Of a DNA stretch of 22,186 nt, positions 1-19,071 are shown in pieces. Position 1 is the stretch's first letter. Each line of letters starts with the position of its first letter. The notes beneath the pieces are model-generated. The model did no database searches, was not told the DNA's origin, and saw only the letters and a list, made by a program, of their open reading frames with translations. The stretch covers positions 1-22,186 of the forward strand of contig MCFH01000166.1 of the NCBI GenBank assembly GCA_002104945.1, written 5' to 3'. The stretch is from Piromyces finnis finn. Lineage: Eukaryota; Fungi; Neocallimastigomycota. Both the position numbers and the translations under genes were made by a program.

Positions 1-797
1 GGATTATTTGATATGTTTCTTAATTTATAAATTTAAGTTAATACATGTAATTATTAATTTAAAAATGATAAAATATATATTAATAGATTAATAGTATAGT
101 TTATTTACAATTTTATTTCCATTTTTTTAATTTTTTTGGAATTGAACCACTTAAGTTATTTTCTGCTAAATTTCTATAAATTATACAAAGTAAAAAAAGT
201 TATATGTACTTATAACATTTTATTTCATATTATTTTAATTAAAAAAAAATTTAATTACAAAGATTTTAAATTTGATAAATTCCCAAGTTCAGGTGGAATA
301 GATCCTGATAATTCATTATGAGCCAAGAATCTTTCAATTATAAAAACAAATATTAAATATAGAAATTATTATTATTATTATTATTATTATTTTAACTACA
401 GTTTTTCTAATTTAGATAGTTTTCCTAGTTCTGGTGGAATAGAATCTACTAAATAATTACTACTTAAATCCCTAAAAGTTAAAATTTAATAATAAAGAAA
501 TTATTAATAATTATAATTATTTTAAAAATTATAGAAATATATGACAATTAAATTACAAGGTTTTTAAATTAGATAGGTTTCCAAGTTCAGGAGTATAGGA
601 CCAATTAAATCATTTAAATCAAGATCTCTGTTTTAAATAAAAATTAAAATTTGCATGAAATAATATTAAAAAGAATTATTATATAAATAATGTTATTTTA
701 ATTTATTCTTTTTTTTAATACTTACAAATTTTTTAATTTAGATAATTTTCCTAGTTCTGGTGGTATTTGACCAGATAACGTATTATTGGAAAAGTCT
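1..797 (-). pseudogene. Mirror (inverted) copy of the partial LRR-TM gene; probably an assembly fold-back rather than a second locus
   Basis: Minus-strand AG/GT-bounded exons at 797-726 (72 nt), 627-557 (71), 471-400 (72), 330-259 (72), 173-109 (65) and 18-<1. Apart from 1-nt indels they are identical to the plus-strand exons at 925-1730. Confidence 0.7.
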
Positions 798-1730
798 CTA
801 TTTTACATGTCATTTAAATATTAATAAAAGTAAAAGATTTAAATATTATAGTAATTATTAATAATATGTTAATTATTAATAAATTTTTTACTTTTATTAA
901 TATTTCAAATGACATGTAAAATAGAGACTTTTCCAATAATACGTTATCTGGTCAAATACCACCCAGAACTAGGAAAATTATCTAAATTAAAAAATTTGTA
1001 AGTATTAAAAAAAAGAATAAATTAAAATAACATTATTTATATAATAATTCTTATTTTAATATATTTCATGCAAATTTTAATTTTATTTAAAACAGAGATC
1101 TTGATTTAAATGATTTAATTGGTCCTATACCTCCTGAACTTGGAAAACCTATCTAATTTAAAAACCTTGTAATTTTAATTGTCATATATTTCTATAATTT
1201 TTTAAAATAATTATAATTATTAATAATTTCTTTATTATTAAATTTTAACTTTTAGGGATTTAAGTAGTAATTATTTAGTAGATTCTATTCCACCAGAACT
1301 AGGAAAACTATCTAAATTAGAAAAACTGTAGTTAAAATAATAATAATAATAATAATAATAATTTCTATATTTAATAATTTGTTTTTATAATTGAAAGATT
1401 CTTGGCTCATAATGAATTATCAGGATCTATTCCACCTGAACTTGGGAATTTATCAAATTTAAAATCTTTGTAATTAAATTTTTTTTAATTAAAATAATAT
1501 GAAATAAAATGTTATAAGTAACATATAACTTTTTTTTACTTTGTATAATTTATAGAAATTTAGCAGAAAATAACTTAAGTGGTTCAATTCCAAAAAAATT
1601 AAAAAAAATGGAAATAAAATTGTAAATAAACTATACTATTAATCTATTAATATATATTTTATCATTTTTTAAATTAATAATTACATGTATTAACTTAAAT
1701 TTATAAATTAAGAAACATATCAAATAATCC
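1..1730. repeat. Near-perfect long inverted repeat: arms ~1-840 and ~882-1730, spacer ~40 nt
   Basis: The reverse complement of 1-60 equals 1671-1730 exactly. I followed the match line by line to ~840/882. About 15 differences, nearly all 1-nt indels in homopolymers, and no substitutions inside the LRR exons. Confidence 0.95.
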
Positions 1731-1902
1731 GTTATTAGAAACTGAAGATAATGATTCATCAATTTCATATATAATTATTGCAATTATATGTATTTTAGTT
1801 CTTGCTATAGTAATATTATTAATATATCTAAAAACTAAAAGGAAAATCTATGATAATGGAAATAAAACTAGTACAATTGGCAATACTCTAAAAAAATGTT
1901 AA
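925..1902 (+). CDS. 5'-truncated extracellular LRR receptor-like protein (24-aa plant-type LRRs, single TM helix, short tail)
   Basis: Exons 925-997, 1096-1168, 1256-1327, 1398-1469, 1556-1621 and 1713-1902, all AG/GT-bounded and phase 2. Repeats include LDLSSNYLVDSIPPELGKLSKLEK and LFLAHNELSGSIPPELGNLSNLKS. The last exon reads NISNNPLLETEDNDSSISY-IIIAIICILVLAIVILLIYL-KTKRK...KKC*, with TAA at 1900-1902. The first two exons each carry one extra base (73 nt) that is absent in the mirror arm. No start or signal-peptide exon is present. Confidence 0.88.
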
Positions 1903-4900
1903 AGTATCTAATTGTTCATGAAAGCAAATAGATCTACAAATATACATCTTTTTTAAATATGTTATCAATTATTATTAATAATTTAAATGAATAAAATATA
2001 AATAAAATAATTTTTATTTATTTTATTTTAAAATAGAAACTTTCAATAAACTATAAATTAAAGTAAATATTATATATTAAATAAATAAAATAAATCAAAT
2101 CAATAAATTTAAAATTAACACTCCTTTCTTTCTTTCTTTATATTGGAGTATTTATTAAATTTTGAGAATACTTACTTTTTCTTAATTAGTATATAATATA
2201 TGATTCAACAAGAAAACTATTAATATTAATATATTTTCTATAATAAATATAAACTTATAATTTGAAATAAAAAAAAATAAAAATTGAATAAATTAGTATT
2301 ATTATTAAAGAAATAATAAATTGATTCCCACTTTTATTAAATACCAATTATATCATTAATATATTAATTAATTTGAATTCCACACAAGTTAATTTCATAA
2401 AAAAAAAAAAAGGGAAATTTAATAACATCTTCCACAAAAAAATGTAATAATTCCAACAACAAAAAAAATAAAATAAAAATTTTATACTCTTATTAACTTT
2501 AATTGGATTAAAAATGTAGGAAATTATATTTTATTGAAAATTTATTAATAAATTAAGATATAAACTTAACATGATGTATATATCATATATATTATATATA
2601 ATTTAGAGGAAAAAATAATATTAATAATATAAGATATAAATTATTTTTTAGGACTGACTAGAATCCATATTTGAATTGTTTATTTATTGTTAGTATGAAT
2701 AAACCAACATATAAACAATTTTAATTTTTTTTTATGTACTAGAACAATGATATAACATTCAAGACTCAAGAAACTATTATATCTTAAATAAAGTTTACAA
2801 CTTAGTCATTTAAATTTTAAATCTTTAATATACGATAACTTTCAGGTTCTAATATATTCTTTCCAAAATCTTAATTGAAATATACAAAAAAATAACTAAT
2901 CAAAAATTTAAAATCTAAAGCATTTAAATAAGTTAATATCTTTAATTAATAATTTCTAATTCTCTACTTATATACTTATATAAAAACAAGTTTATTAAAT
3001 ATATTGTTTATATCTAATAATTCGTATTTTTAAATTATGTCAATATGTAGATATAATATAATTTAAAAAATATCACAGTCAATAATAAATAAAATTTTAT
3101 TTAAATACTTTAAATACTATTACTTACAATGTTTATTTCTTTATCTCTATTATTTATTTTTTTTAAAAATTAATATATAATTTCTTTGTTAAAAATAAAA
3201 TTTAATAATGAAATGTTGAGGTTTTTTTTTTTTTTTAATTTTTATAAACTGTTTATATTACATATTTAATTGAAGCCATGTCATTATTTCAGCTTTCTAT
3301 TAATAATAGTTGTTTATTAAGTAAAAGCAAATACAAATAAATATTATAAAAAATATTATTATTTTAGAAAATATTAAAAGTTCTTTGTTAAGAAAGTAAT
3401 TTTCTTTTTTCTTCTATTCTAAAAATTTATTTGTTTTTGTATATGAAAGTTTAATTATGAAAGTATTAAACATTTCACCCAGATAAAAATATAATTTAAT
3501 CTCCAATGTAAACTAAATTAATGTCTAAATCATGATAAAAACTAATTTACCATGTTTTATTTTCTGGTTTTACACTTGAGATTTTCTCCTATAAATTAGG
3601 ATTAGGATATGTTACTTTGGTAAATACGAATAAATAATAATTCTTTTTCAAATACACCTCCTATTTTTTAATCACTTGAAAGGGCTAATATCGTTTCAAA
3701 TATTTACACAATCGAAAAAACCTCATTCAAACATAAAAGAAATATATTTAAAAAGAATTTAATAATAATAATAATAATATAATAATATTGTTATTTTAAT
3801 GATAATTTAATAATATAATAAAATATTATTTTATAAGGGTACTTCAATATCAAAAGTTGACAAAATAACAAATCATAATTTTTTTTTTTTAAAAATAAAA
3901 AAAAAATAATAAATTCAAATAATTCATTTTATTTTCAATTTAGTGTATAAAAATATTAACTAAAATTGTCATACTGTTTAATTTTATTTGATATATATAT
4001 ATATATAATATAATAAGATAAACAAAAATTATTTCATGTAATAATTGTATATTTATAAAAATTAATGGAAATATAAATAAAACACAACAAGATTACCAAT
4101 TTTAATACATTTCACCCTATCTATACATTATATAATCTCTATGAGTGCATGCCATTATCTGACATTCTAATTAACACAACGAACGAAAACATTATTTTTA
4201 ATAAATTGTTTCTGTAATAGTCCAATTCTAATAGAAAAGCTCAATAAAATAAATAACAATAATTATGTAAAGCTTAAATAAAGAGAGAATATATTTTAAA
4301 TAACTAATTTTTATAGCAATATTTAAGATGAATTATTTGTTTTTTTTTTAAATGATACTTGAGAAAAAAAGGATATATTAAAATTATAATTTAAAATAGC
4401 ATAGAAAATTAGTATAAAACTTTTATTAAAACATAATTAAATATGTCAATTTACATATTATGTAAAGGAACTGAACCTTTTAATCTATGCTGATTAAAAA
4501 CAATAAATATAATATATTTATTCTTATTTAATGGGCTTTAATTATTAAATTGAGTCATTCTAATAATTAGTAGATATGAAATATAAAATAATAAAAATTA
4601 TAGTTCATTATATAAGTAATTATTGTATTAAAATATTAAATAATGTATATAAATGTAGGAAACATCAAAAATAGCTAATAATTAAATGTTATATTTTTTA
4701 TAATAGTCCATATAGAATTATGTATCTTTAATTATTAGAAATAGGAAAATTATTCATTAATTCTTATTAATTCTATATAGAGCGTATTTCTATAGTATTT
4801 TGTATTGTTAGCCATATGCTATCGGGAGAAATGATAATTTCAAATAGTTTAAATAATAGAAAAATAGTACAATTAAACAGAGCTAACATAATTCAAAATA

Positions 4901-5140
4901 AAATTAAATAATTTAAAGTTCATTAAAAAGAAAATTAATACTTTTCTTAAAAACATAAATAATTACAATTTATCATTGAACCTTATTCCATACACGGATG
5001 GAAAATTTTATTTTTAATTTTTATTAATAGTCCTATAAAAGTTATTAAAGTATTTTTAAAAAATAATAGATTTAGTAGGATTTTTTTTTATTATACCTTT
5101 CATTTTATTATTTTTAAATAGTATAAAAATATTTTTGATA

Positions 5141-7607
5141 ATGAATATATTTATTTTATTGATTAATTTCATTTTTATAATAAAATTTATACTTGCTGAA
5201 AAAGATATTAATAAAGAATGTGAAATAGTAAATAAATTATTAAATATAGATCTATCATTTGATTGTTGTATACACAAGAATATTATATGTTCAGATGATG
5301 GTCATATAATTAGAATGTAATGAATTAATATTAAAATATTTATTTCATTATTAGATATTTATAATTGTAAATATTTTTTATTAGTAGTATTAATAACAAT
5401 TTTTATTAAATAAAAGAAATTTTAATTTTGGTTATTCAAATTCTGATGAAGTTGAAGATATTACAAATGAAAAGTAATACGTTTTTTTTTTTTTTTTTTT
5501 AATATTACTAATATTACTTTTTATATAAATGATCATTATATATTCAAGATTTTATAATATTTATTAATAAAATATTCAAATATATTTTTACTGTTTAAAT
5601 AGATCCATACCACCTGAATTTGGAAATTTAACATATCTAACATATTTGTAATGCTTTATAATACATAATAAATATTATATCTATTAAAAAATGATTTTTA
5701 TATTTATATATATTTTTATTTGGAAACAGGAGTATAAGTGGAAAAAATTTAAAAGGTTCTATACCATCTGAGCTCGGAAACTTAACAAATCTAGAATATT
5801 TGTAAATGCTTTTTTACCTAATTATATTATTTTATTAATCATCAAATATGTTTTTATATTTATAATAACATATTTTGTACATTTCAATAGATATATATAT
5901 GGAGATAAATTATCTAGTACCATACCACCTGAACTTGGAAACTTATCAAAATTAGAATATATGTACTGTATTTATTAAAATTTCTTATATTAATTATTAT
6001 TGTTATGTTTATTAAATTTTGAATTTACTTTTAATTCATTAAAGATATTTGCATGGAAAAAGTATAAATGGTACTTTGCCATCTGAACTTGGAAATTTAA
6101 CAAATTTGAAAGAAATGTAACTATTTAGATATCATTTTATGTTACATGTTTATGAAAAAGGCATTAATTTATTATATACTTTATACGAAAAAAAAAAAGG
6201 TATATTACTAGAAATAATATAACAGGTTCAATTCCTTCTTCACTTGGAAAATTATCAAATTTAAAAAACATTGTAATTAATTAAAAATAATAATTAAATA
6301 TCAATCAATTAAATACTATTAAATAATAATTTATTATTTCCCATAACTTTCATTTGAAAAGAGTTATAGATCAAAATTTAATAGATGGTAAAATACCATC
6401 CGAACTTGGAAATTTATCAAATCTGGAAAGAATGTAATAATAAATGGGTTTAATATTTATATTTATAGTTGATGTAATATATTAATTAGTATATTAAATA
6501 CTATACATTTATTGATTGATACTTAATATTTTATTAAATATAAAAAAGTGATTTTTCATATAACTATTTATCTGGACATATACCTCGGGAATTTGGAAAA
6601 TTATCAAAATTAAAGAATTTGTATATATTTAAAAAATTTTAAAACATTATTATTTAAAATTAAATATTTACTTATTATGTAATATACATAATTATTATTT
6701 TATTTAAAATAGAGAACTTAATATAAATGATTTAATTGGTTCTATACCTTCTGAACTCGGAAATTTGTCTAATTTAAAAACATTGTAATTGCTGAATGTT
6801 AACATACTTTATTTTAATAAATGAATATTATTACATATTTACTATTATATTTAATATTAAATGTATAATTTAATATGATAGAGATTTATCCGATAACTTT
6901 CTGGTAGATTCTATTCCTCCTGAACTTGGAAAGCTAACTAATATGGAAAAATTGTAATTAAAATAAAAATAACAACAACAACAATAATAATGATAATTAA
7001 TAATAAAAAATATAACATATTTTTTTGCATAATATCTTATTTTTGTATAATATAGAGATTTATCTTTTAATAAATTATCAGGATCTATTCCATCTGAGCT
7101 AGGAAATTTATCTAATTTAAAATCTTTGTAATTAAAAGTTTTTATTATTTATTGAACAAGTTAACAAAATATAATATAATATATTTACAATTTTTATTTT
7201 ATTGTTAATATTATTTTAATATGAAAAACAAAATAGACTCTTAAATGATAATAATTTAAGTGGTTCCATTCCAAAAGAATTAAAAAAAAAGGATATAAAA
7301 TTGTAAATAAGTTTTACTCTATCAAAATATAAATTTAAATATACTTTAATATAAATTTCTTTTTATTATGATGTTAAATTATTAATTATATTATTTTACG
7401 TTTTTAATTCAAATATTAAGAAATGTATCAAATAATCCGTTATTAGAAACTGAAGAGGATAAAAGGTCACCTCTTTTAACGATTATTATTATTTCAGTAT
7501 GTATTCTATTATTTATTACAGTGGTGGTGTTAATATATCTAAAAGCAAAAAACAGAAACTTTACCATAGAAGAAAGTAGAAATAATTCTTCAAATGATGA
7601 AAATTAA
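5141..7607 (+). CDS. Complete type-I membrane LRR receptor-like protein (signal peptide, Cys N-cap, ~11 LRRs of 24 aa, TM, short tail), ~392 aa; one 1-nt insertion in exon 7
   Basis: 14 exons: 5141-5316, 5417-5473, 5603-5647, 5730-5801, 5891-5962, 6045-6116, 6200-6272, 6362-6433, 6549-6620, 6713-6784, 6882-6953, 7056-7127, 7237-7302 and 7421-7607. All introns are GT-AG, phase 2. Signal-peptide-like start MNIFILLINFIFIIKFILA; N-cap EC..N.LL....DCC....I.C..GHI; repeats LxxLxLxxNxLxGxIPxELGxLxx; TM LLTIIIISVCILLFITVVVLIYL followed by KAKNR; TAA at 7605-7607. Exon 7 is 73 nt (A6 where the related exon 10 has A5). Confidence 0.92.
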
Positions 7608-8152
7608 GAAATCAATAAATATCTAATATTTAAATTTCTTTAATTTGAAATCTTTATTATAACTTTATATTTCTATCATTCTTTTAATTAATAAATATTT
7701 CAAAATTTTATATAAATATAAATTCTTAAAAATTACTCAAAACATAAACTTTTTAATTTTTGTTAGACTATAAAGAAATGTTATTATTTTAACATATATG
7801 TTCCTTTTTATTTATTTTACAAATCTATAAATATGTTTAAATTTACATCGGCGAAAGAATTACATTTATCATAATTTTAACTTTTTCAATATTAATTAAA
7901 CTGAAAATTTATATAAAAAATTTGTTGTATACGTTATTTTAATACATTATGTTACAAATTATACTTTGGAATAAAAAAAAACTTTATAATTTGTTTGTTT
8001 TTAATATTAAAAAAAAGTAATGTTTTTAGTAGTAACTAAATATAATATTTTATAATATTATTATAAATAAAAAGATTATAGTATGGTTTTTAAAAATAAT
8101 AATAAATCCTTTGACCTTTTTATTAATTATTTTTAAAGTAACAACACAAATA

Positions 8153-8186
<34 letters not shown>

Positions 8187-10047
8187 GATTTACCAAAAAT
8201 TTCACCAAAATAAAAAAAGTTTTTTTAGCTATGTAAACATGTAAAGTATTAAAATTTTTATTTTCAAATTAATAATTAAATTATGATAAGATGTTAATAT
8301 TCAAAGATTGTATAAATTATAAATATATATATTATTTCGACATGCTATAAAAGAATATTAAATAATTTATAATGAAAGATAAGTATCTTAATACAGGAAT
8401 AAACTTATTTTATCCTAAAATTATTAAATAATTAAATAAAATGTCCAATGTTTAAATAATATAGTATTAATAAAAATGGATAATATCTATTTTTTAAAAG
8501 CGATAAGATTTAAATAGTTTAATTATATATATAAAGGAATTTTATAATAATAAAAATGGTTTAATTTCAATTAAAGTTTATAATAAATATTCCATATCTT
8601 TACCAGGTTAATTTTAATAACTTTTTTGGTTACTTTATTTATTTTGAAAAATTAAAAAAGAATAGCTATTTATTATTTATTATTCTTTATAGTGTTTTTT
8701 TTTCTTTTTAAAATTAACATGTATTTAAATGTATTTTTTTAAAGTTAATCTTAAATTATTGAAAATAATAACTTTTATTTAGAATTTATTTATTTTTATA
8801 TTTATATATATATATATACTACTTTTGTTTAATATAAAAAAGATGCTTTAGTAATATGGAAATGCTGATTTGATATTATTTGAAATATTTATATTTATAT
8901 ATATAAATATTCAATTACTTTACAACTAATAAATAAATTTATTTCGAATATATGGAAAAAAATTAAAGGTATTTAATATTTTTAAAATAAAATAAAAATA
9001 AAAAAATAAAATGTTTACTATATATCAGGCGGACAAATTAATTATGTGGTTAAGTTCCTTCTTAGTACCTTTAGATATGTAATTTAAATTGGAAATATTC
9101 AGAAAATGGTATTTAATACAAAATATATTTTCATAAAACAAAAAAATTTTAAAATTATTCATAATGGTATATAATGAAACTATTTTAATGCTTTAATACA
9201 TTAATAACTGTATCTCATCTATTTTAAAATGGTAATAAAAAATATATTTTTTAATAATGATTTCTAATTCTCTATCCAAATATAAACCAAGTTATTGAAT
9301 ATGAAATATTTATGTAATAATTTTAACAAAATAAATTATCCAGATCATCTAAATAAGGAAAATATATCTTCAATAAAGTTGACAAAATTTTCTAGTTTTT
9401 ATATAATTAATAAATATTAAATAGTTTAGTTTTTGAGAAATCATTTTTATACTTCATCAAATAACAATTAATATTTATTATTTTATGGTTTTAAATAAAA
9501 AAAATATTTAAAAATATTCTAGATACTTTAAAACTTTTTTATATGCCTTTTGTTAATAATAAATACCTATATATTTTCAACTTATATATATAACTGATTA
9601 TATATTTTTTAGTCAAATTCATTTGTGGCTTTTTTTAATTTGAAAAATATTATAATTGAATATATATTATAGAAAATTAAATAATAATCAATTATTTGGT
9701 GAAATTCCTCAAATATTTAAAGATCTCTCAGATAAAATAGAATTGTAAATATATATTTACATTAAAAAATAAAAATTATTTTTTTTATAGTTATATTAAT
9801 ATCTTAAAATATCTATTTATATATTGATTATATAAAATAGAAATTTAAGGAATAATCCATTCATTAATACAGAGACTAATGTTGAATGCAAATTTATTAA
9901 TAATTTAATTGGTAAAGAATAATCCTTTATTTATTTTAAAAAGTAATTTCAGTAATTATGAATTATCTTTGACTTTTCCTGAAGGTATTTAAAATTTACA
10001 ATATTTAGAAAGTTTGTAGTTAATATATTACCATAGATAATTATTAA

Positions 10048-10080
<33 letters not shown>

Positions 10081-10508
10081 GGAACCTACAATTTATATTA
10101 AATATTAAAAATATATGATAGTACATTTACAAAAGAAAAAGTCAAAAATACTGTATTCCCTGATTCATTTGGATCCATGCCATATGTGGAATTAATGTAT
10201 AAATATTATATATATTATATTTGATTTGATATTCAATAGGAATTCTAAATTTTTATTAATTAACTGACTCGATCCCATCGGATATAAAAAATATTAAATA
10301 TTTAGAAGCTTTGTAAAAATGAATTAATGAATTACTTTAAATTATTAATACATAGAAAGAAGAAGACAGTAAACAAGCTTTTTATATATTTTTTAATTTT
10401 AATTATTAATAATATAGAGATTTAAGTAATAACAAATTAGCAGATTCAATTCCTTCGGAAACTGAAGACCTAAAATATTTAGAATTCTTTTAAAATAAGT
10501 TTATACTA

Positions 10509-10716
<208 letters not shown>

Positions 10717-11105
10717 GAAATTTTATTTTCATGTTATAATATTTTTTAAAAGATTAAAAATAAATGACTGTAACAGATATGTCAAGGTTAATTCTGGTTT
10801 AACTGGTGAAATACCTGATTTAAATATTTATGATAATATGGAATTGAATCCTGCAAATAAAACTTGTCAATTACAACTGGATTATGTTATACAATTATTA
10901 GTAGAAGATGCAATTATTACGGTCTTAAAAAGTGTATAAATCTATTATTATTTATGTTTATTTATCTTTTAATGAAATTAAAATATAAATAGAAATCTAA
11001 CATTATAATATAATAATCATAGGTCCAAAAGAAGATCCAATTGAAGATGATAGTATATAAAAATAAAAATTATAAAGATTTCTCTTTTTTTTTTTAATTA
11101 ATGCT

Positions 11106-11275
11106 ATATTATATTATATTATATTATATTATATTATATTATATTATATTATATTATATTATATTATATTATATTATATTATATTATATTATATTATATT
11201 ATATTATATTATATTATATTATATTATATTATATTATATTATATTATATTATATTATATTATATTATATTATATT
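11106..11275. repeat. (ATATT)n microsatellite, 34 units, intronic
   Basis: Perfect pentamer run ending just upstream of the AG at 11283-11284. Confidence 0.97.
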
Positions 11276-11284
11276 ATTTTAAAG

Positions 11285-11896
11285 TGTAATGAAGATAAGG
11301 ATGTAAATTGTGAAGAAAAAACTTATAACTTGGTCGTTGATGAAGATAAACATTTACTTCAAGAAGACAAATCTATACCAGGTTTACTTTATTATTGTGA
11401 AACTAATAATGATATTTTTGAATGTAATAAAAAAGGGGATTTAGGTTATTATATTAATAGTAAGAATGGCATTTATACCTGTACTCAAAAAGGATGTTCT
11501 GGTTATAAATTCGGTAAAAGTTCAAATGGAAAGATTGAAGTTATTGATGATAATCAATTTAATATTTATTTAATCTACAAAATTACAGCAGATGTTACAA
11601 TGCCAGCTAAAAACTATCTTGTTGGACATGAATGTGTAGGTAGTATTTTTGGAACAAGTAAGAATGGAGATTATATCATTATAACTATTGATGAAAACTC
11701 TGTCACTTCAAATTCTTCCTTTGATCACTCTGTCCCTAAATTTGTTTATACAAATTCATTAACAAACGAAATATTAAATAGAGAAAGTTGTTCAATTGAT
11801 ATTACAGAATTTGAATATAACGAATCAGACGATGTTTATAACAAACATCGTGAATCTTTTAACCAAAAAATACTGTATTTTGTAAATAATATGTAA
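11285..11896 (+). other. Terminal exon encoding a Cys/Tyr-rich module resembling anaerobic-fungal scaffoldin-family repeats
   Basis: Open frame CNEDKDVNCEEKTYNLVV...GLLYYCETNNDIFECNKKGDLGYYINSKNGIYTCTQKGC...SIFGTSKNGDYIIITIDENSV. From memory, the G.LY.C...C....GYYIN....Y.C....C pattern matches Neocallimastigomycota scaffoldin-like repeats; not verified by search. Confidence 0.55.
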
Positions 11897-13606
11897 AATA
11901 TTTAACAATTTTTATCTCATTTTTAATTACAACTTATTTAATGTATTATGTATTAGTGAGTCTATAAAGGACAAATAAAATAAATATAAATATTAATAAT
12001 TAAAAATTATTGAAATAAAATTATTAAGGATTAAAGGTTTTTTTATATTAGATATTATTTTTTTTTATCTATTTATATAATGCATGACACTAACATTTAT
12101 AAAATTATATTATTAATTAAAATGATGTTAAAATAGATTATTGGATTTTTAGTTAATATATATATTAAATTTTATATATAATATAATTCAGTTTTATATT
12201 AAATCCATTTATGAATTTTTCCAATATTAGGTGTGTACTATTCATTATATTATATCATTCCTATAAATGATATAAATCAAGTTATATAATTATTATTAAT
12301 ATTGTGAATTTTTCTATTATATACTTTTTTGAGTATTACTATTTCTAGACTATATAATCATAATTTTTATATATGAAACTTTTATATTTATATGATATAT
12401 AAATAGATTAATGTTATTATATTATTAGAAGAATATTAAATTTAATAACAAAAGTATAAGCCTTAGATGTTTTATGAGTATGTACTCTCATCTAATAATA
12501 ATAAATTTTATAATAATAAGTATTATATATATCTAATTTATAAAATAGCATAAATTGTATATAATATAAAAATTTTCTTTACTATGTTAGTTTCTATATT
12601 GTTAATTTGTTTTTTCTTCTTTCCAATTCTTTTTTCCAGGCTTACCTTCTTTGTATTATCACTATAATCATTTGTTATAATTCATTTTATTATTACATTA
12701 TATCAATAATAAAAATATCTTTGTTATCAAAGTAACCATAATCCTATATAGTATCTTTGATATACCTCTTTCTTAATTATTAGTTATTCTTTTCATTAAA
12801 AATTATTTATTATTAAATAATCATAGAAAATATTTAATATTCAATATTCAAAAATATATATATACAAAAAATTATAATGTAAAATAGTCAAGTATAATAA
12901 TTAAAGTCTAATTATTATACATGCATATAATTAATTAATAAATATCATATATTATAGTATAAAGTAATATATATTACAATATAATTAATTAATTATAATT
13001 TTTTAATTAAAAAAAATTTCCGAATTAAGAATTTCTTTTAAAAGAATTTTTTTTGGGGAAATAAATGATAAATCTGCCTTTCTTTCATCAGCATTTTCAA
13101 TTTATTATTTTTAAAATAATTATTTATAAAAAAAACCTTTAAAAATAGAGGATTCCTAATAATGTATAGCAATATTTATAATATTTATATATAACAATAT
13201 AACAATATATATTTTATTAAAATCTTTTTTTACAAATATTATTATTTTTACAAAAAATATTAGTTATTTAAAAATAATATTATTTGTTAAAGATAATAAT
13301 ATTAAATTTAATTATATATTAGAGTATATTGTAATATATTAGATATTTTAATTTATTTTTTTTATATTTAAATAAATTTTTTTAATTAGAATTAAAAATT
13401 TAATTAAAAAATTTAATTATATATTACAATATATTTCAATATATTCAATTTATTTAAATTAATTTTTTTAAAAGAAATTCTTTAAATCACCTCCGAATTT
13501 AAAAGGTATAAAAGAAGAATTTTTCTTTTTCTTTTTCTTCTTCTTTCTTCCTTCCTTTTTTTTTTTTTAATCTTTTGCCAAAAGGTGTAAAGAATAATTA
13601 ATAAAA

Positions 13607-16600
13607 ATGATATTAAAATTTATTATGAATTTATTGCTATTGATTACAATAGCATTTGGATATTCATGCGAAGAAATTTGTGAACAACTAAAAGTAGAAA
13701 ATTATAATAACTGTAAAGAGGATAGTAATGGAGATGCCATTGAATTGTATGTATTGATATTATTAATAATGAAATAAATATATTATTCTTATCTACTTGG
13801 TAGTTTATCAAAAGTACTAAAAAAATAAAAAAAATATTAAGATTAATGTCTAGAAAGGACTTATTAGAGATTCCTGAATTTATTTTTAATGTAACAACCT
13901 TAAAAAAATTGTAAGTAAATAAAGTTAAAATAAGTTAAAGAGAATCACCCTAAATTATCCACCTGTATATATTTTATATTTTATTCATTTATTTAAATAA
14001 ATTTATATAGAGATCTTTCTATAAATAAATTGACTGAAATTCCAGTTGAAATAGGAAATCTTAAAAATCTTGAACATTTGTTTGTATATTTTTTTTTAAT
14101 TATAAAATAAAAGTATTTATAAATCAATTTTAGTAAATAAATATTCATTTTAATAAAAAAATTAAAAAAAGACTTTTATACAAAAATGATATAAACAATA
14201 TTCCAAATGAAATAGGAAAACTCACTAATCTAAGATATTTGTTAGTAATTATTTTTTAAATATTTAAATATAAAATTAAATAAAAACATTAATAATAATA
14301 GTTAAATTATATATAAAAAATATAATAGAGATTTAGGCTATAACAATATAAAAAATATCCCTAATGAAATTGGTGAATTAAGAGGTTTATGGAATTTGTA
14401 AGTGCATTTTTATCACATGATTATTATCATAATTATTATATTTTATTAATTTTCTTATTTTAAAATAAAAATACAAAATAGACATTTAAATAGTAATGAA
14501 ATTTCTTCCATCCCAGATTCATTTGGAAATTTGACTGAACTTTGGAGTTTGTATGTATTATTATTATTTATAGTAAAAATATAAGAAATAATAGTAATAA
14601 ATTATTTTATTGTATAATAATTCTATTTTTAAAAAATTAAAGAGATATACAAAATAATAAATTAGAATTGGTTCCGTGTTTTTTTGGAAATTTTACCAAT
14701 CTTGAAAAATTGTATGATAATGCATATATAATAAAATTAATAAGAGAAAAAAAAATTTCATTGTAAAGTTTTAATAATTTTTAAAAATTAAAAAATAAAT
14801 TAAAAAGAAATTTAGGAGGTAATGATTTTTCTAAAATTACCTCTGAAATTGGAAATCTTGTTAATCTAAAAGAGTTGTATGTGTTCCAAAAAAAAAAAAA
14901 AAAAAAAAAAAAAGATATTAAATATTAATTATTTTAACATTTATATTGATTTTTAATTATTAATATAATTATATAAATTTATAGAATTTTGTACGGAAAT
15001 AATTTAAAAACTCTTCCTGATACCATTGGAAAACTTACAAATCTTGAACAACTGTAAGTGCTAAATTTTTAAAATACAATTAAATTATGATTTATTTTTT
15101 TTTTAAAAAAAAAAAGAGAATATAAAAAATTTATATTATTATTGAATAGAATTGAAATTTCATTCTTTTTAAAAAATTCTAAAATATTTATTTATTCATT
15201 TTTTTTTTGAAAATTGTTTTATAGGAGTTTAAATAGTAATAGTTTGGAAACACTTCCAGATTCAATTGGAAACCTTAGTAATCTCACTTTACTGTATGTT
15301 TTTTTATTTAGAAAATAATTAAAATAATAATAGTTTTTTAATATTGATGCTTTTCTTTAAAATACTTTTATAGGTATTTAAATTATAATAATTTAAAAAC
15401 TCTTCCTGATACCATTGGAAAGCTTACAAAACTTGAACAACTGTAAGTGATAAATTTTTAAAATACAATTAAATTATGATTTATTTTTTTTTAAAAAAAA
15501 AGAGAATATAAAATTTTATGTTATTATTGAATAGAATTGGAATTGTATTAATTTATTCTTTTTTTTTTTTTTGATAATTGTTTTATAGGTATTTAAATTA
15601 TAATAATTTGGAAACACTTCCAGATTCCATTGGAAATTTTTCTAATCTTTCATCTCTGTATAAATTTTGTTTTATATAATTTGATGAATACTTTATAAAA
15701 TAAATAAATATTTTTATAATCAATTATTAATATTTAATATTTAATATTTGTAAATATTAGAGAGATGATAGAAAATAATTTATCAACTCTTCCCGATTCC
15801 ATTGGAAATCTTACAAAACTTGAAAGAATGTATGTTTTTCTTGATTTAGAAAATAATTAAAATAAATATTAAAGTTTTTATTTAAAATAATCTTATAGAG
15901 ATTTATTCGGAAATAATTTAACAACTCTTCCTGATACCATTGGAAAGCTTACTCAACTTCATTGTTTGTAAGTTTTCATTACATTTTAAAATAATATAAT
16001 ATAATATAATATAATATAATATAATATAATATAATATAATATAATATAATATAATATAATATAATATAATATAATATAATATAATATAATATAATACATA
16101 AAAATACTTTATTAAATATTTATATATTTTTCATATTATTTAATTTACTAAGATATTTGTCAAACAATAATTTAACTGTCCTTCCTGATTCTATCGAAGG
16201 AATGATTAATCTTACTTATTTGTATGAATTTAAATAATTGAAAAGTAAAAATAATACTTAATTATTAATATATATAATTGTATTTATTGTATTTTATAGA
16301 TATATAAGTAATAATAGTTTATCTGAGATTTTTGATAAAATAGTAAATCTTCCAATTGAGTATTTGTATGTTTTTCCTCTTTTTCTATGTTAACAATATT
16401 ATGCTTTATCTTATGAAAAATAATATTAAAAAATATTTATAAAATATTAACTTAAATAGAAATTTAAATTATAATAATTTTACCGAAATTCCTGATTCAG
16501 CTGGAAAGCTTTCTAATATTAGAGTTTTGTATATTATTCTTTATATTATTTATATAATCAAAGAATTTATAATAATAGTGGAGATAATTTAATGATAATA

Positions 16601-19071
16601 TTTTAAATATTTTCATAGAGAATTGTCTAATAACAAGATATCTAAAGTTTCAAAGGAAATTGTAAATTGCAATGAAAGCTTTTCATTGTAAGTATTTATC
16701 ATAAAATCATTATATATAATAATTATAATTTAAAATATTTTATTAATTATATATTTATTTATATAAATTTAAATAATCCATTAATATTTTTAAAGATATT
16801 TAAATAATAATAGTTTAACTGAGATTCCTGCTGAACTTGGAAATGTTTGGAGATTGTATAGATTTATATTATTTATAATAAAAGTATTATATACAATGAT
16901 TTAAAATTTAAAATATTCTATTAATTATATTTTTTTAAAAATGTAAATAATAATTTAATTAATATAGAGAATTAAGCGATAATAAAATTACCGAGTTTCC
17001 TTTTAAAACAGGAAGAATTGAACATTTGTATGTATTTATATTATTTATTATAAAAATATTATATGTATAATTAATTATAGTTGATATTTATATAAATTTA
17101 ATTAATCATCATTTAATTAATGTAGAGAATTAAACAATAATAAAATAACCAAGATTCCTCCTGAGATTGAAAATCTCACTAAACTTTATTCACTGTATAT
17201 ATTTATTATTTATCTTTAATTATATATTGAAATATTTGATTAATTAATTTAAATAATAATTTAATTAATATAGAGAACTCAATGATAATAGAATTAGTGA
17301 GATTCCTCCTGAGATTGGAAATCTCACTAAACTTTATTCACTGTATATATTTATTATTTATCTTTAATTATATATTGAAATATTTGATTAATTAATTTAA
17401 ATAATAATTTAATTAATATAGAGAACTCAATGATAATAGAATTAGTGAGATTCCTGCTAAGTTTGGGGGTATTAAATATTTGTAAGCATTTATATTACTT
17501 ATTATTAAAGTATTATTATAAATAATTAATTATTAATTAAAATATTTTATTAATTATATATTTATTTATATATATTTAATTAATGTAGAGAATTAAACAA
17601 TAATAAAATAACCAAGATTCCAGCTGAAATTATATATAATTATATTCAACATTTGTATTTAATCAAAAACAGATTATATAATAAAAATATAGTCTAAATA
17701 AAATGAAAATATAAATAATTTATTAATTATATATTTATTTAATTATTAATTGAATTAATATAGATATTTAAATGATAATTACATAACTAAGCTTCCCTGG
17801 AAGGAGATAAAAATACATTTTAATTTGTATTATCATTTTTTATAAAAGTATTATATATAAAAATTGAAGTATTTAATTAATTGAAATAAATTTATTATAT
17901 AGATGTTTAGATAATAATTACATTACTGAGCTTCCCACTATTAAAAGTGAATATATTTTTATTAGGTAATTATTTAATTAAATCATTATAAAATTATTTT
18001 ATGTATCTATTAAAATTTAACAATTTTATTATTTTGCTTTTTTTTTTAACAAAAATTTTATATTTTAAAAATAAATTAATAGTTTAATTAATAATTGTAT
18101 TACTTCATCACCAGTAATGACAGGAGACGAAAAATATTCTCTGTATTGTATACTATTTTTTAAATATAAATTTGTTTAATTAACTTGAAAGAAAAAAATT
18201 GATAATAATATAAAATAATTTTATTTTCGCTATTTATATAAATTTAATTAGTTATTTAGAAGAAAATAATGACGAAAAATGTAAAAATTTAAGAAAATGT
18301 GGTGATCAGTATGAAGAATGTCCTCTTGATCAGTTCTGTACTAATAATGGATTTTGTGTAGAAGATAAGTTTAATATATCTAATAATAGTGAAGAAACAG
18401 TGACAACAACTTTCACTTCAAGTGAGGAATTAGCAACTACAACTTTTGAATCAATGACAGATAAAGAATTAACAACTACAACAACTCATCCAAAAGTTAC
18501 TACTGAAGAAACAAGCATAATTGAAAAATTAACAACAACAACAATTCAACCAACAACTTCTGAATCAATTACAAGTAAAATTACAAATATTAAATCTAGT
18601 ACAACCTCAATGGTCAAAACTATGATAACTTCTTCAACAACAACAACTACTAGAACTACTACAATAATCAAAGCATCTACTACTAGAACTACTACAAAAA
18701 CAAAGACTACAACTAGCACTACCACTATTAAACCATCCTCAACTTTTCATCCATGGCAATGTGGAAAAGGTATTAGATCCTGTCAAAAAGGATATTGCTG
18801 TAGTAGATATGGTTGGTGTGGAAAAAGTAAGGATTATTGTGATCTTGCTCAAGGTTGTCAATCTGAATTTGGTCATTGCAAGAAATACACTCCAGAAAAA
18901 AAGCATCATCACGAAAATGCAAACTCTAAAATTCATCCATGGAAATGTGGTAAAGATATTGGTTCCTGTAAGAAAGGATACTGTTGTAGTAAATATGGAT
19001 GGTGTGGTAAGAGCGAAGCATACTGTAGTAAAGAACAAGGATGCCAATCTGAATTTGGAAAATGTTGGTAA
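13607..19071 (+). CDS. Secreted LRR / Thr-rich stalk / tandem CBM18 chitin-binding protein, 28 exons, ~899 aa, apparently intact
   Basis: Exon 1 is 13607-13746 (MILKFIMNLLLLITIAFG-YSCEEIC...). LRR exons: 13842-13910, 14011-14079, 14172-14240, 14329-14397, 14482-14550, 14643-14711, 14808-14876, 14985-15053, 15225-15293, 15374-15442, 15589-15657, 15761-15829, 15899-15967, 16153-16221, 16300-16365, 16460-16528, 16619-16687, 16796-16855, 16968-17027, 17126-17194, 17274-17342, 17422-17481, 17589-17654, 17764-17826, 17903-17965 and 18083-18142 (60-69 nt, all multiples of 3, GT-AG, phase 2). The last exon, 18252-19071, is in frame with ORF 18400-19071. The spliced sum is 2700 nt with no internal stop. 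Consensus LxxLxLxxNxLxxLPxxIGxLxx. Confidence 0.94.
15001..15640 (+). repeat. Older tandem duplication of a two-exon LRR unit (exons 9-10 vs 11-12)
   Basis: 15001-~15150 and ~15390-15540 share the exon 3' part (aatttaaaaactcttcctgataccattggaaa...gaacaact) and the following intron (gtaagtg.taaatttttaaaatacaattaaattatgatttattttt...). Confidence 0.85.
15991..16095. repeat. (ATAAT)n microsatellite, 21 units, in intron 14 of the LRR-CBM18 gene
   Basis: Perfect pentamer run between exons 15899-15967 and 16153-16221. Confidence 0.97.
17152..17455 (+). repeat. 148-bp tandem duplication of one exon+intron unit
   Basis: 17152-17299 and 17300-17447 differ at one base (ttgAaaat vs ttgGaaat). A third AGATTCCT begins at 17448. 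Confidence 0.93.
18397..18750 (+). other. Thr/Ser-rich low-complexity linker (mucin-like stalk) within the last exon
   Basis: Translation VTTTFTSSEELATTT...TTTTTRTTTIIKASTTRTTTKTKTTTSTTTIKPSST. Confidence 0.9.
18754..18879 (+). other. CBM18 / hevein-type chitin-binding domain 1
   Basis: WQCGKGIRSCQKGYCCSRYGWCGKSKDYCDLAQGCQSEFGHC: 8 Cys, with the CCS-x-Y-G-W-C motif. Confidence 0.93.
18940..19068 (+). other. CBM18 / hevein-type chitin-binding domain 2 (C-terminal)
   Basis: WKCGKDIGSCKKGYCCSKYGWCGKSEAYCSKEQGCQSEFGKCW*. Confidence 0.93.

Follow-up and report, generated by a model that had tools for sequence, protein, structure and literature searches.

A Piromyces finnis locus with plant-type and CBM18-tailed leucine-rich repeat genes: ordinary duplication and assembly errors rather than a shuffling receptor repertoire

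Among the fungi that a 2010 study surveyed, leucine-rich repeat (LRR) pattern-recognition receptors were reported to be missing (PMC2939053). LRR receptor kinases have been reported in oomycetes and other groups (PMC3268121), and groups of LRR receptor-like kinases (RLKs) are mentioned in chytrids (PMC13618815; 2026). Full-text literature searches turned up no description of LRR proteins from anaerobic gut fungi. A study of rice LRR-kinase genes (PMC3050792) describes one 72-nucleotide (nt) exon per repeat, with a phase-2 intron at the first Leu of the xxLxLxx segment. Phase-2 exons of one repeat each also occur in brown-algal ROCO genes (PMC11378527) and in Tetrahymena (PMC6564038). Here, we describe four LRR-bearing genes of the anaerobic gut fungus Piromyces finnis, all on contig MCFH01000166.1 of assembly GCA_002104945.1, whose entire 22,186 nt form the window that we analyzed.

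A first-pass annotation of this window had proposed a single modular design with interchangeable C-terminal anchors, possibly diversifying as a recognition repertoire, and had noted that extracellular LRR receptors are generally considered absent from Dikarya fungi. The last point is supported for the fungi covered by the 2010 survey. As for the repertoire, the evidence shows ordinary duplicated gene families and assembly errors, not shuffling immune receptors. The locus probably holds members of two separate lineage-expanded LRR families and one relic, rather than variants of one design. As judged from their sequence, the proteins are likely secreted or surface LRR proteins, as had been proposed, with one class predicted to be anchored in the membrane (genes 1 and 2) and one most likely held on the chitin wall (gene 4). 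All four genes are annotated publicly as hypothetical proteins. They occupy the following positions:

925..1902, forward strand: gene 1, last six exons only, the contig end cutting the gene; extra bases at 962, 1144 and 1890
5141..7607, forward strand: gene 2, 14 exons, 392 amino acids (exon models, RNA joints and public model)
9673..10489, forward strand: gene 3, decayed plant-type LRR exons a-f, with defects identical on scaffold 49
10753..10933, forward strand: gene 3 exon g, a last LRR-like repeat and cap (GLTGEIPDL...NPANKTC), with a phase-0 donor to exon h
11285..11896, forward strand: gene 3 exon h, a 203-residue Cys/Tyr-rich module of C-terminal scaffoldin type
13607..19071, forward strand: gene 4, 28 exons, 908 amino acids (exon models, RNA word shares and Pfam)

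Exon models were built by chaining phase-2 exons and checked manually; a length-maximising version of the chaining was discarded, as it over-extended exons. All 45 introns of genes 1, 2, and 4 are GT..AG introns in phase 2, and most internal exons, each encoding one LRR, measure 72 nt in genes 1 and 2 and 69 nt in gene 4. The LRR micro-exons of the first-pass annotation, and their phase-2 single-repeat character in these three genes, are therefore borne out. Exon GC content is 25.6% and intron GC content 10.1% across the same genes, in a window of ~15% GC. Both types of LRR found here share one intron site, after base 2 of the codon for the first Leu in xxLxLxx, and the exon junctions of gene 2 read TT/G or AT/A (/ denotes the junction) within the L4 codon. 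Gene 2 agrees in exon size, intron position and phase with the rice LRR-kinase genes described in PMC3050792.

The repeats themselves fall into two subtypes. A single-repeat profile of genes 1 and 2 has the 24-residue consensus xLSxNxLxGSIPSELGNLSNLEx, which conforms to the plant-specific (PS) LRR subtype, LxxLxLxxNxL(S/T)GxIPxxLGxLxx. Among the 60 PDB matches listed for this profile, we found only plant LRR ectodomains, the best being MIK2 (1.3e-52), GSO1, FLS2, and ERL1. The LRR relics of gene 3 are also of this 24-residue plant type. The profile of gene 4 has instead a 23-residue consensus, xLxxNNLxxxPDxIGNLTNLxx, of the SHOC2/RSU1/Leptospira type (xLxxNxLxxLPxxIGxLxxLxx); its top PDB matches are the Leptospira proteins LIC11098 (2.8e-50), LIC10831, and LIC12759, followed by SHOC-2 (1e-26) and RSU1, and relatives of gene 4 carry PF23598 LRR_14. 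What remains of the "one design" is thus the shared one-repeat phase-2 exon, now seen to carry plant-type repeats in genes 1-3 and SHOC2/Leptospira-type repeats in gene 4.

C-terminal anchors follow the same division. In the window and the relatives that we fetched, a transmembrane (TM) helix goes with plant-type repeats and CBM18 with SHOC2-type repeats, and true relatives of the scaffoldin-type module have no LRR. Because anchor type tracks LRR subtype, we read the locus as two families without swappable anchors, and the proposal that the anchors are interchangeable is not supported.

The first family, which we call family A, consists of genes 1 and 2. In the clean version of the locus on scaffold 49 (MCFH01000049.1; see below), gene 2 encodes 392 amino acids and equals the public model on a third contig, MCFH01000182.1. 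A hydrophobic signal-type segment (residues 1-19) precedes a Cys N-cap (CC-x6-C) and ~12 LRRs, made up of nine 72-nt exons, an irregular first repeat (57+45 nt), and a last repeat of 66 nt. The C-terminal part comprises a C-cap, a TM helix at residues 351-369, and a 23-residue tail, and the protein has an acidic juxtamembrane stretch. Gene 2 has the layout of a plant receptor-like protein (RLP), with signal peptide, LRR ectodomain, one TM helix, and a short kinase-less tail, the match being one of layout only. We found no kinase domain in family A, whose tails are only ~23 (gene 2) and ~22-25 residues (gene 1) long. Pfam detected no LRRNT_2 (PF08263) in the 58-residue first exon of gene 2, nor anything else at E<=1, the CC-x6-C spacing having been seen by eye; Pfam likewise gave no matches for the N-cap exons, the TM exon, or exon g of gene 3.

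RNA contigs support this model. They contain the gene 2 joints 6784>6882 and 7127>7237, both GT..AG (RNA runs X2 and X3), and one exon run that joins 5891-5962, 6045-6116, a 72-nt stretch, 6362-6433, and 6549-6620; another covers 5127-5316 and a 57-nt stretch and then continues from 5603. Because these contigs show its joints and its consecutive exons, gene 2 is expressed, and its modelled splicing is confirmed. All joins in the RNA contigs are between consecutive exons, and no GT..AG joint that skips an exon is listed among them, though such contigs drop rare isoforms. Splice-joint contigs cover gene 2 only; transcripts of genes 3 and 4 were judged by the share of sampled sequence words present in RNA runs.

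Two details of gene 2 deserve mention. Its first repeat is split over 5417-5473 and 5603-5647, with an acidic insert GYSNSDEVEDITNE, and one RNA contig reads from 5603 past the donor at 5647 to 5687, suggesting some intron retention or an alternative donor. Exon 7 contains an extra A at window position 6263, and we considered whether it might be a skipped pseudo-exon. We rejected this, since mRNA contains the exon and none of the DNA contigs of run X1, nor scaffold 49, has the extra base.

Gene 1 is visible in the window only in part, through these exons:

925-997, forward strand: gene 1 exon
1096-1168, forward strand: gene 1 exon
1256-1327, forward strand: gene 1 exon
1398-1469, forward strand: gene 1 exon
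1556-1621, forward strand: gene 1 exon
1713-1902, forward strand: gene 1 exon

Together they encode five plant-type LRRs (the last in a 66-nt exon), a C-cap, a TM helix, and the tail. Analysis of hydrophobic segments bears out that genes 1 and 2 end in a TM helix and a short tail, and that a signal peptide is present in the genes whose 5′ end is intact, genes 2 and 4. On scaffold 49 all six exons of gene 1 are open, and the public model there, of 609 amino acids, extends upstream. Upstream exons are found on both other contigs, and on MCFH01000182.1 they match exons 3, 4, 6, 7, and 8 of gene 2 in order. Genes 1 and 2, which share their exon order over at least 11 exons, are collinear tandem duplicates.

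The three contigs are copies of one locus. Window positions 840-21875 match scaffold 49 (421,779 nt; matching locus MCFH01000049.1:31084-52148) without a single substitution; the 51 indel events between the two fall almost entirely in homopolymers or microsatellites. MCFH01000182.1 covers this locus as well, and its alignment over 17.4 kb shows 3 mismatches and 79 indels. A 20-kb locus is thus present three times in the P. finnis assembly with 0-3 substitutions between copies, and the window is a redundant copy of the scaffold 49 locus, not an independent locus. Protein models in the public annotation differ by copy: 398, 422, and 392 amino acids for gene 2; 235, 235, and 310 for gene 3; and 856 and 893 for gene 4, with 430 where MCFH01000182.1 stops. 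Paralogue counts taken from this assembly will accordingly come out inflated by redundant contigs.

The start of the window is itself misassembled:

1..835, reverse strand: fold-back (palindromic) copy of 885-1730, an assembly artefact and no gene copy

Positions 1-835 are the reverse complement of 885-1730, a feature absent from the first-pass annotation. Outside a 25-nt centre (860-885) the arms show 0 substitutions and differ by single-base indels only, nearly all in homopolymer runs. Upstream of the position that corresponds to window 840, MCFH01000182.1 holds more exons of gene 1 and no palindrome, and for this reason we regard the contig start as a fold-back artefact. The pattern is typical of long-read assembly and makes phantom minus-strand LRR exons at 259-471. 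We rejected the possibility that minus-strand exons at 234-835 form a real inverted paralogue, given 0 substitutions and a fold-back that is missing from the other contig. The indels within exons of genes 1 and 2 (962, 1144, 1890, and 6263) are all extra bases unique to the window contig. Because these bases are contig-specific and the contig starts in a fold-back, the truncation of gene 1 and the frameshifts in both genes are assembly errors, and the features that had made these genes look like pseudogenes are artefacts of a redundant, error-bearing copy.

The second family is represented by gene 4, whose parts are:

13607-13746, forward strand: exon with signal peptide and Cys N-cap
13815-18142, forward strand: LRR exons encoding ~26 LRRs of LPxxIGxL type, 60-96 nt long, seventeen of them 69 nt
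18252-19071, forward strand: last exon, with a Cys-rich linker, Thr/Ser stalk, and two CBM18 domains
18385..18750, forward strand: Thr/Ser-rich stalk (T+S = 46% over residues 661-810)
18760..18879, forward strand: CBM18 domain 1 (hevein-type), 8 Cys, PS00026 signature CQKGYCCSRYGWCGKSKDYC
18946..19065, forward strand: CBM18 domain 2 (hevein-type), 8 Cys, PS00026 signature CKKGYCCSKYGWCGKSEAYC

Pfam assigns the C-terminus to PF00187 in two stretches (E=4e-16). Both copies have the ~40 residues and 8 Cys of CBM18 and its pattern C-x(4,5)-C-C-S-x(2)-G-x-C-G-x(3,4)-[FYW]-C, so that chitin binding is predicted. The Thr stalk and two CBM18 domains of the first-pass annotation are confirmed by these matches and by the stalk composition. 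Between the last LRR and the stalk lies a 5-Cys segment, CKNLRKCGDQYEECPLDQFCTNNGFC (18330-18385; residues ~645-672), which may be a C-cap or a small knot domain. In four RNA runs from three studies, 0.29-0.32 of sampled words from the gene 4 stretch were present. The expected share is 0.35 for a fully spliced mRNA and 0.15 for the last exon by itself. Because the observed share is near the former and well above the latter, most LRR exons of gene 4 are present in transcripts, and the gene is expressed.

Relatives that combine LRRs with CBM18 are common in Anaeromyces robustus, Neocallimastix lanati, N. "constans", and rumen metagenomes, where they carry generic names, and the CBM18-tailed relatives that we read have gene 4-type repeats, not plant-type. 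Two proteins that had seemed to join plant-type LRRs to CBM18 tails (P0063 and P0052) were rejected, as both carry the other repeat type.

How repeats are gained can be seen directly in gene 4:

17104..17520, forward strand: recent in-register tandem duplication of a 148-nt exon-plus-intron unit, ~2.8 copies, 92% matches

Comparison of 60 nt from each end shows no difference between introns 17195-17273 and 17343-17421. The exon between them, 17274-17342, is chimeric: its 5′ half and upstream intron match the unit at 17422, and its 3′ half and downstream intron match the unit at 17126. The breakpoints fall at conserved "IP" codons within exons, which argues for one in-register unequal crossing-over and not intron-mediated shuffling. 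An older duplication of two repeats is visible at 14985-15501, where 14973-15112 and 15362-15501 are 89% identical, with 95% identity in the downstream intron and 84% in the exon. The recent exon duplications of the first-pass annotation are thus real at 17104-17520, and repeat number does change by recent duplication. We found neither mosaic exon sharing nor different exon orders between the paralogues compared, genes 1 and 2; near-identical exons are adjacent tandem copies only.

For genes 1 and 2, we compared seven collinear exon pairs (161 codons), sorting positions by their place in the LRR fold and calculating the ratio of nonsynonymous to synonymous divergence (dN/dS):

Concave face: 17/42 amino acid differences, dN/dS 0.44
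Other non-scaffold positions: 14/49 amino acid differences, dN/dS 0.35
Scaffold positions: 5/70 amino acid differences, dN/dS 0.07
All positions, gene 1 versus gene 2: dN/dS 0.25

Amino acid differences avoid the LRR scaffold, as in any LRR, and we see no sign of positive selection. Divergence had been described as focused on exposed residues; what remains of this is a weak trend on the concave face that does not set it apart from other non-scaffold positions (Fisher's test p=0.27), with dN/dS <1 in every class. Genes 1 and 2 are under purifying selection. Together with a conserved exon order, breakpoints inside exons, and consecutive exons in RNA, this speaks against the description of the locus as diversifying.

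Gene 3 combines a decayed LRR array with a module of another origin. The upstream exons, in order, are:

9673-9744, forward strand: exon a, intact
9841-9922, forward strand: exon b, cap-like
9944-10015, forward strand: exon c, with an in-frame TAA
10122-10196, forward strand: exon d, 75 nt
10240-10312, forward strand: exon e, 73 nt and frameshifted
10418-10489, forward strand: exon f, without a GT donor

DNA contigs of run X1 match the window with 0 differences at 9016-10035 and 10088-10436 and cover the defects of exons c and e. No long RNA contigs were found over exons a-f, and the public models omit the decayed exons: the model of 235 amino acids begins within exon g, at an ATG at 10838, and reaches exon h by a phase-0 splice (window 10838-11896), and that of 310 amino acids has a short first exon followed by exons a, g, and h. 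In RNA run X2 the word share over 9600-11900 is 0.29. The expected share is 0.26-0.32 for exon h with or without exon g, 0.44 with all LRR exons, and 0.49 for unspliced RNA; because the observed value fits only the first of these, a transcript that carries the upstream LRR exons is excluded. Neither public product contains a hydrophobic segment, and hence neither has a signal peptide or TM helix. Gene 3 is the only real relic of the locus, and its product is probably not functional at the surface. Birth-and-death dynamics with a pseudogene, as proposed earlier, are not supported for gene 1, whose apparent decay is an assembly artefact.

The module in exon h is nevertheless scaffoldin-like, as had been noted, both by homology and by predicted fold. 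A search of 1.84 billion proteins yielded 16 representative homologues; of those that are full-length, ORX48692.1 (P. finnis, 1313 amino acids, UniRef "Scaffoldin") is the closest, matched at its C-terminus with 44% identity (E=2.6e-41). The predicted structure is all-beta and of high confidence (pLDDT 83, pTM 0.81); compared with PDB, it has no solved relative, and it matches AFDB "Scaffoldin" models of gut fungi with TM scores of 0.5-0.71. This C-terminal module of ~190 residues, all-beta in prediction and disulfide-rich, may be an anchoring or terminal module of ScaA-type proteins. The copy in exon h is without the last conserved Cys pair. Scaffoldin homology is confined in gene 3 to this C-terminal module; the long, secreted Cys/Tyr-repeat array that putatively binds dockerins is not part of it. 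Among the true relatives of the module we found no Pfam domain and no LRR, and one protein that seemed to combine LRRs with scaffoldin (P0134) was rejected as a weak match to a BspA-type bacterial protein. The proposed display on a cellulosome scaffold is not supported: the products are without signal peptide or TM helix, and the upstream LRR array is dead and missing from RNA.

The best-supported reading of the two intact families is surface adhesion or partner binding, which we consider likely. Family A proteins would be type-I membrane proteins that hold a curved, plant-type solenoid of ~12 repeats outside the cell and bind a ligand through its variable concave face. The tail of ~23 residues, with no catalytic domain, would be too short to signal alone, so that a partner would be needed, as in plant RLPs. 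Gene 4 is predicted to be secreted, with its pair of CBM18 domains binding chitin, most likely that of its own wall, and its Thr-rich stalk, probably O-glycosylated, holding a solenoid of ~26 LRRs off the wall; it too would bind ligand through a variable concave face, a layout that fits wall-associated LRR adhesins. In both families, change would come about through ordinary tandem duplication of genes and through unequal crossing-over in register. In gene 3, the last exon of a dead LRR array appears to be spliced to the scaffoldin module, yielding a short transcript and a product with no export signal. We demonstrate gene structures, splicing and expression of genes 2 and 4, domain identities, assembly artefacts, collinearity, and purifying selection; from these we infer membrane topology, attachment to the wall, O-glycosylation, and a role in adhesion or ligand binding. 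Several points weigh against this reading. The function of the LRR proteins is deduced from architecture alone, and the CBM18 domains could bind foreign chitin instead of the fungus's own wall. The dN/dS values were calculated from 161 codons; dS is high, at 0.54, and the genome has a GC content of 15%. Finally, the 61-residue TM exon of family A, searched alone and as an alignment, found no relatives in metagenomes, a weak null given so short a query.

Other explanations share parts of this evidence. Under one, the locus would be a diversifying repertoire for recognizing non-self or other ligands, with symmetric exons duplicated, shuffled, and skipped, and with products shown on membrane, wall, and cellulosome. 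It draws on the fact that all exons are phase 2-2, such that any repeat joins any other in frame, on the very recent repeat gain in gene 4, on variable residues that cluster at the x positions of the beta-face (entropy table), and on precedents in brown algae (PMC11378527) and Tetrahymena (PMC6564038). The locus nonetheless behaves otherwise: exon order in genes 1 and 2 is the same over at least 11 exons, the concave face has dN/dS <1 and is not significantly more variable (p=0.27), duplication breakpoints lie in exons and not in introns, RNA contigs have consecutive exons only with no exon-skipping joint listed, and anchors follow LRR subtype. The one member that would be displayed on the scaffold, gene 3, is a relic without signal peptide, and the pseudogene and frameshifts of genes 1 and 2 are assembly errors. 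We regard such a repertoire as quite unlikely. Gene 4 and its relatives could also be structural or protective wall proteins whose CBM18 domains coat or cross-link the fungus's own chitin and whose LRRs organise wall or cellulosome proteins. In SHOC2 and RSU1 the LRRs scaffold protein complexes, and gene 4 has that LRR type; its CBM18 domains are intact with a chitin-binding signature, and related gut-fungal proteins join CBM18 to chitin deacetylase-type domains (PF01522). A long Thr stalk that projects a 26-repeat solenoid would be more typical of outward-facing adhesins, however, and a structural role leaves membrane-anchored family A unexplained, which makes this alternative unlikely, if less so than the repertoire.

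The origin of family A can be weighed in the same way. Anaerobic gut fungi live on plant biomass, and family A could stem from plant-to-fungus transfer of an LRR receptor-like gene with its introns, followed by expansion. The repeat subtype is the same as in plants, with 60/60 PDB matches listed being plant proteins; the 72-nt exon and the phase and position of its intron are as in rice LRR-kinase genes (PMC3050792); and the CC-x6-C N-cap is plant-like, with plant LRRNT_2 fragments as nearest atlas neighbours at scores of ~0.8, which serve as a lead only. The same intron position and phase are, however, found in the non-plant LRRs of gene 4, and brown algae and ciliates likewise have phase-2 exons of one repeat each; because all of these share it, the exon design is not specific to plants. 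Pfam found no LRRNT_2 in the N-cap exon, PDB holds the plant-type subtype almost only from plants and so biases the profile result, and the chytrid LRR-RLKs (PMC13618815) allow vertical descent. We accordingly view transfer as improbable, the least likely of the explanations weighed here. A broader scenario, which we think rather doubtful, is that in anaerobic gut fungi the plant-type LRR receptor-like membrane proteins make up a large family that is expressed and that agrees with plant LRR receptor genes in repeat subtype, N-cap spacing, 72-nt exon size, and intron position and phase. Such proteins would have been obtained by plant-to-fungus transfer of an intron-bearing gene or retained from a very old eukaryotic design, and would act with chitin-anchored LRR proteins as sensors or adhesins for plant-wall or microbial ligands.

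This fungus expresses proteins, predicted to be anchored in the membrane, whose ectodomain and exon-intron design match those of plant LRR receptor genes. Also expressed is a second class, which couples a long LRR solenoid to chitin-binding modules. Should the proteins of both classes bind plant-wall or microbial ligands, they would open a way to study the attachment of gut fungi to plant particles or the sensing of their partners. The gene design common to both families also bears on the age of the one-repeat-per-exon LRR cassette.

Of the remaining sequence features, three are pure microsatellites that sit in or beside introns:

10511..10716, no strand: (TAA)68 microsatellite, after the defective end of gene 3 exon f and upstream of exon g
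11105-11281: (TATAT)35 microsatellite
15987-16096: (TAATA)22 microsatellite

The lengths of (TAA)68 and (TATAT)35 vary between the redundant contigs.

Set beside known systems, family A most resembles the plant LRR RLPs and RLKs (MIK2, FLS2, ERL1, and GSO1) in its 24-residue repeat, xLSxNxLxGSIPSELGNLSNLxx, and plant RLPs in its succession of signal peptide, Cys N-cap, LRRs, acidic juxtamembrane stretch, one TM helix, and short tail. Unlike plant LRR-RLKs, it is fungal, lies in a genome of 15% GC, and has no kinase, no LRRNT_2 that Pfam detects, and no Cys-pair C-cap that we could see. Gene 4 recalls the Listeria internalins, with their GW or LPXTG anchors, in joining an N-terminal LRR solenoid to C-terminal wall-binding modules, and the Leptospira LIC proteins (LIC11098, LIC10831, and LIC12759), against which its repeat profile scores best. 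In contrast to these bacterial LRR adhesins, gene 4 is eukaryotic and intron-rich, is predicted to be secreted through the endoplasmic reticulum, and carries CBM18 behind a Thr-rich stalk, so that the likeness is one of design only. Closer relatives are the gut-fungal "RNI-like" or "L domain-like" proteins (Anaeromyces robustus P0069 and P0078; Neocallimastix lanati P0079), in which LRR_8, LRR_4, and LRR_14 are followed by 2-4 Chitin_bind_1 domains; gene 4 is 25-39% identical to gut-fungal LRR+CBM18 proteins over the LRRs and ~50% over the CBM18 tail. It differs from them in being ~2x longer (~26 versus ~6-10 repeats), in its 120-residue Thr stalk, and in having two CBM18 domains only.

Exon h of gene 3 is homologous to the C-terminal module of the fungal scaffoldin ORX48692.1 (ScaA family) and has the same predicted all-beta fold. 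Unlike a scaffoldin, gene 3 lacks a long Cys/Tyr repeat array (as in P0122), a signal peptide, and the last Cys pair, and unlike other true members of this module family it has LRR-derived exons in front of the module. As to gene structure, the brown-algal ROCO/LRR-GTPases (PMC11378527) and the Tetrahymena genes with 90-bp exons (PMC6564038) share with this locus symmetric phase-2 single-repeat exons and duplication of exon-plus-intron units. The P. finnis genes differ from both families in that exon order is conserved between paralogues, breakpoints lie within exons, and no alternative splicing is seen in RNA contigs. They differ from the cytosolic ROCO proteins, further, in that the P. finnis LRR proteins are predicted to be extracellular.

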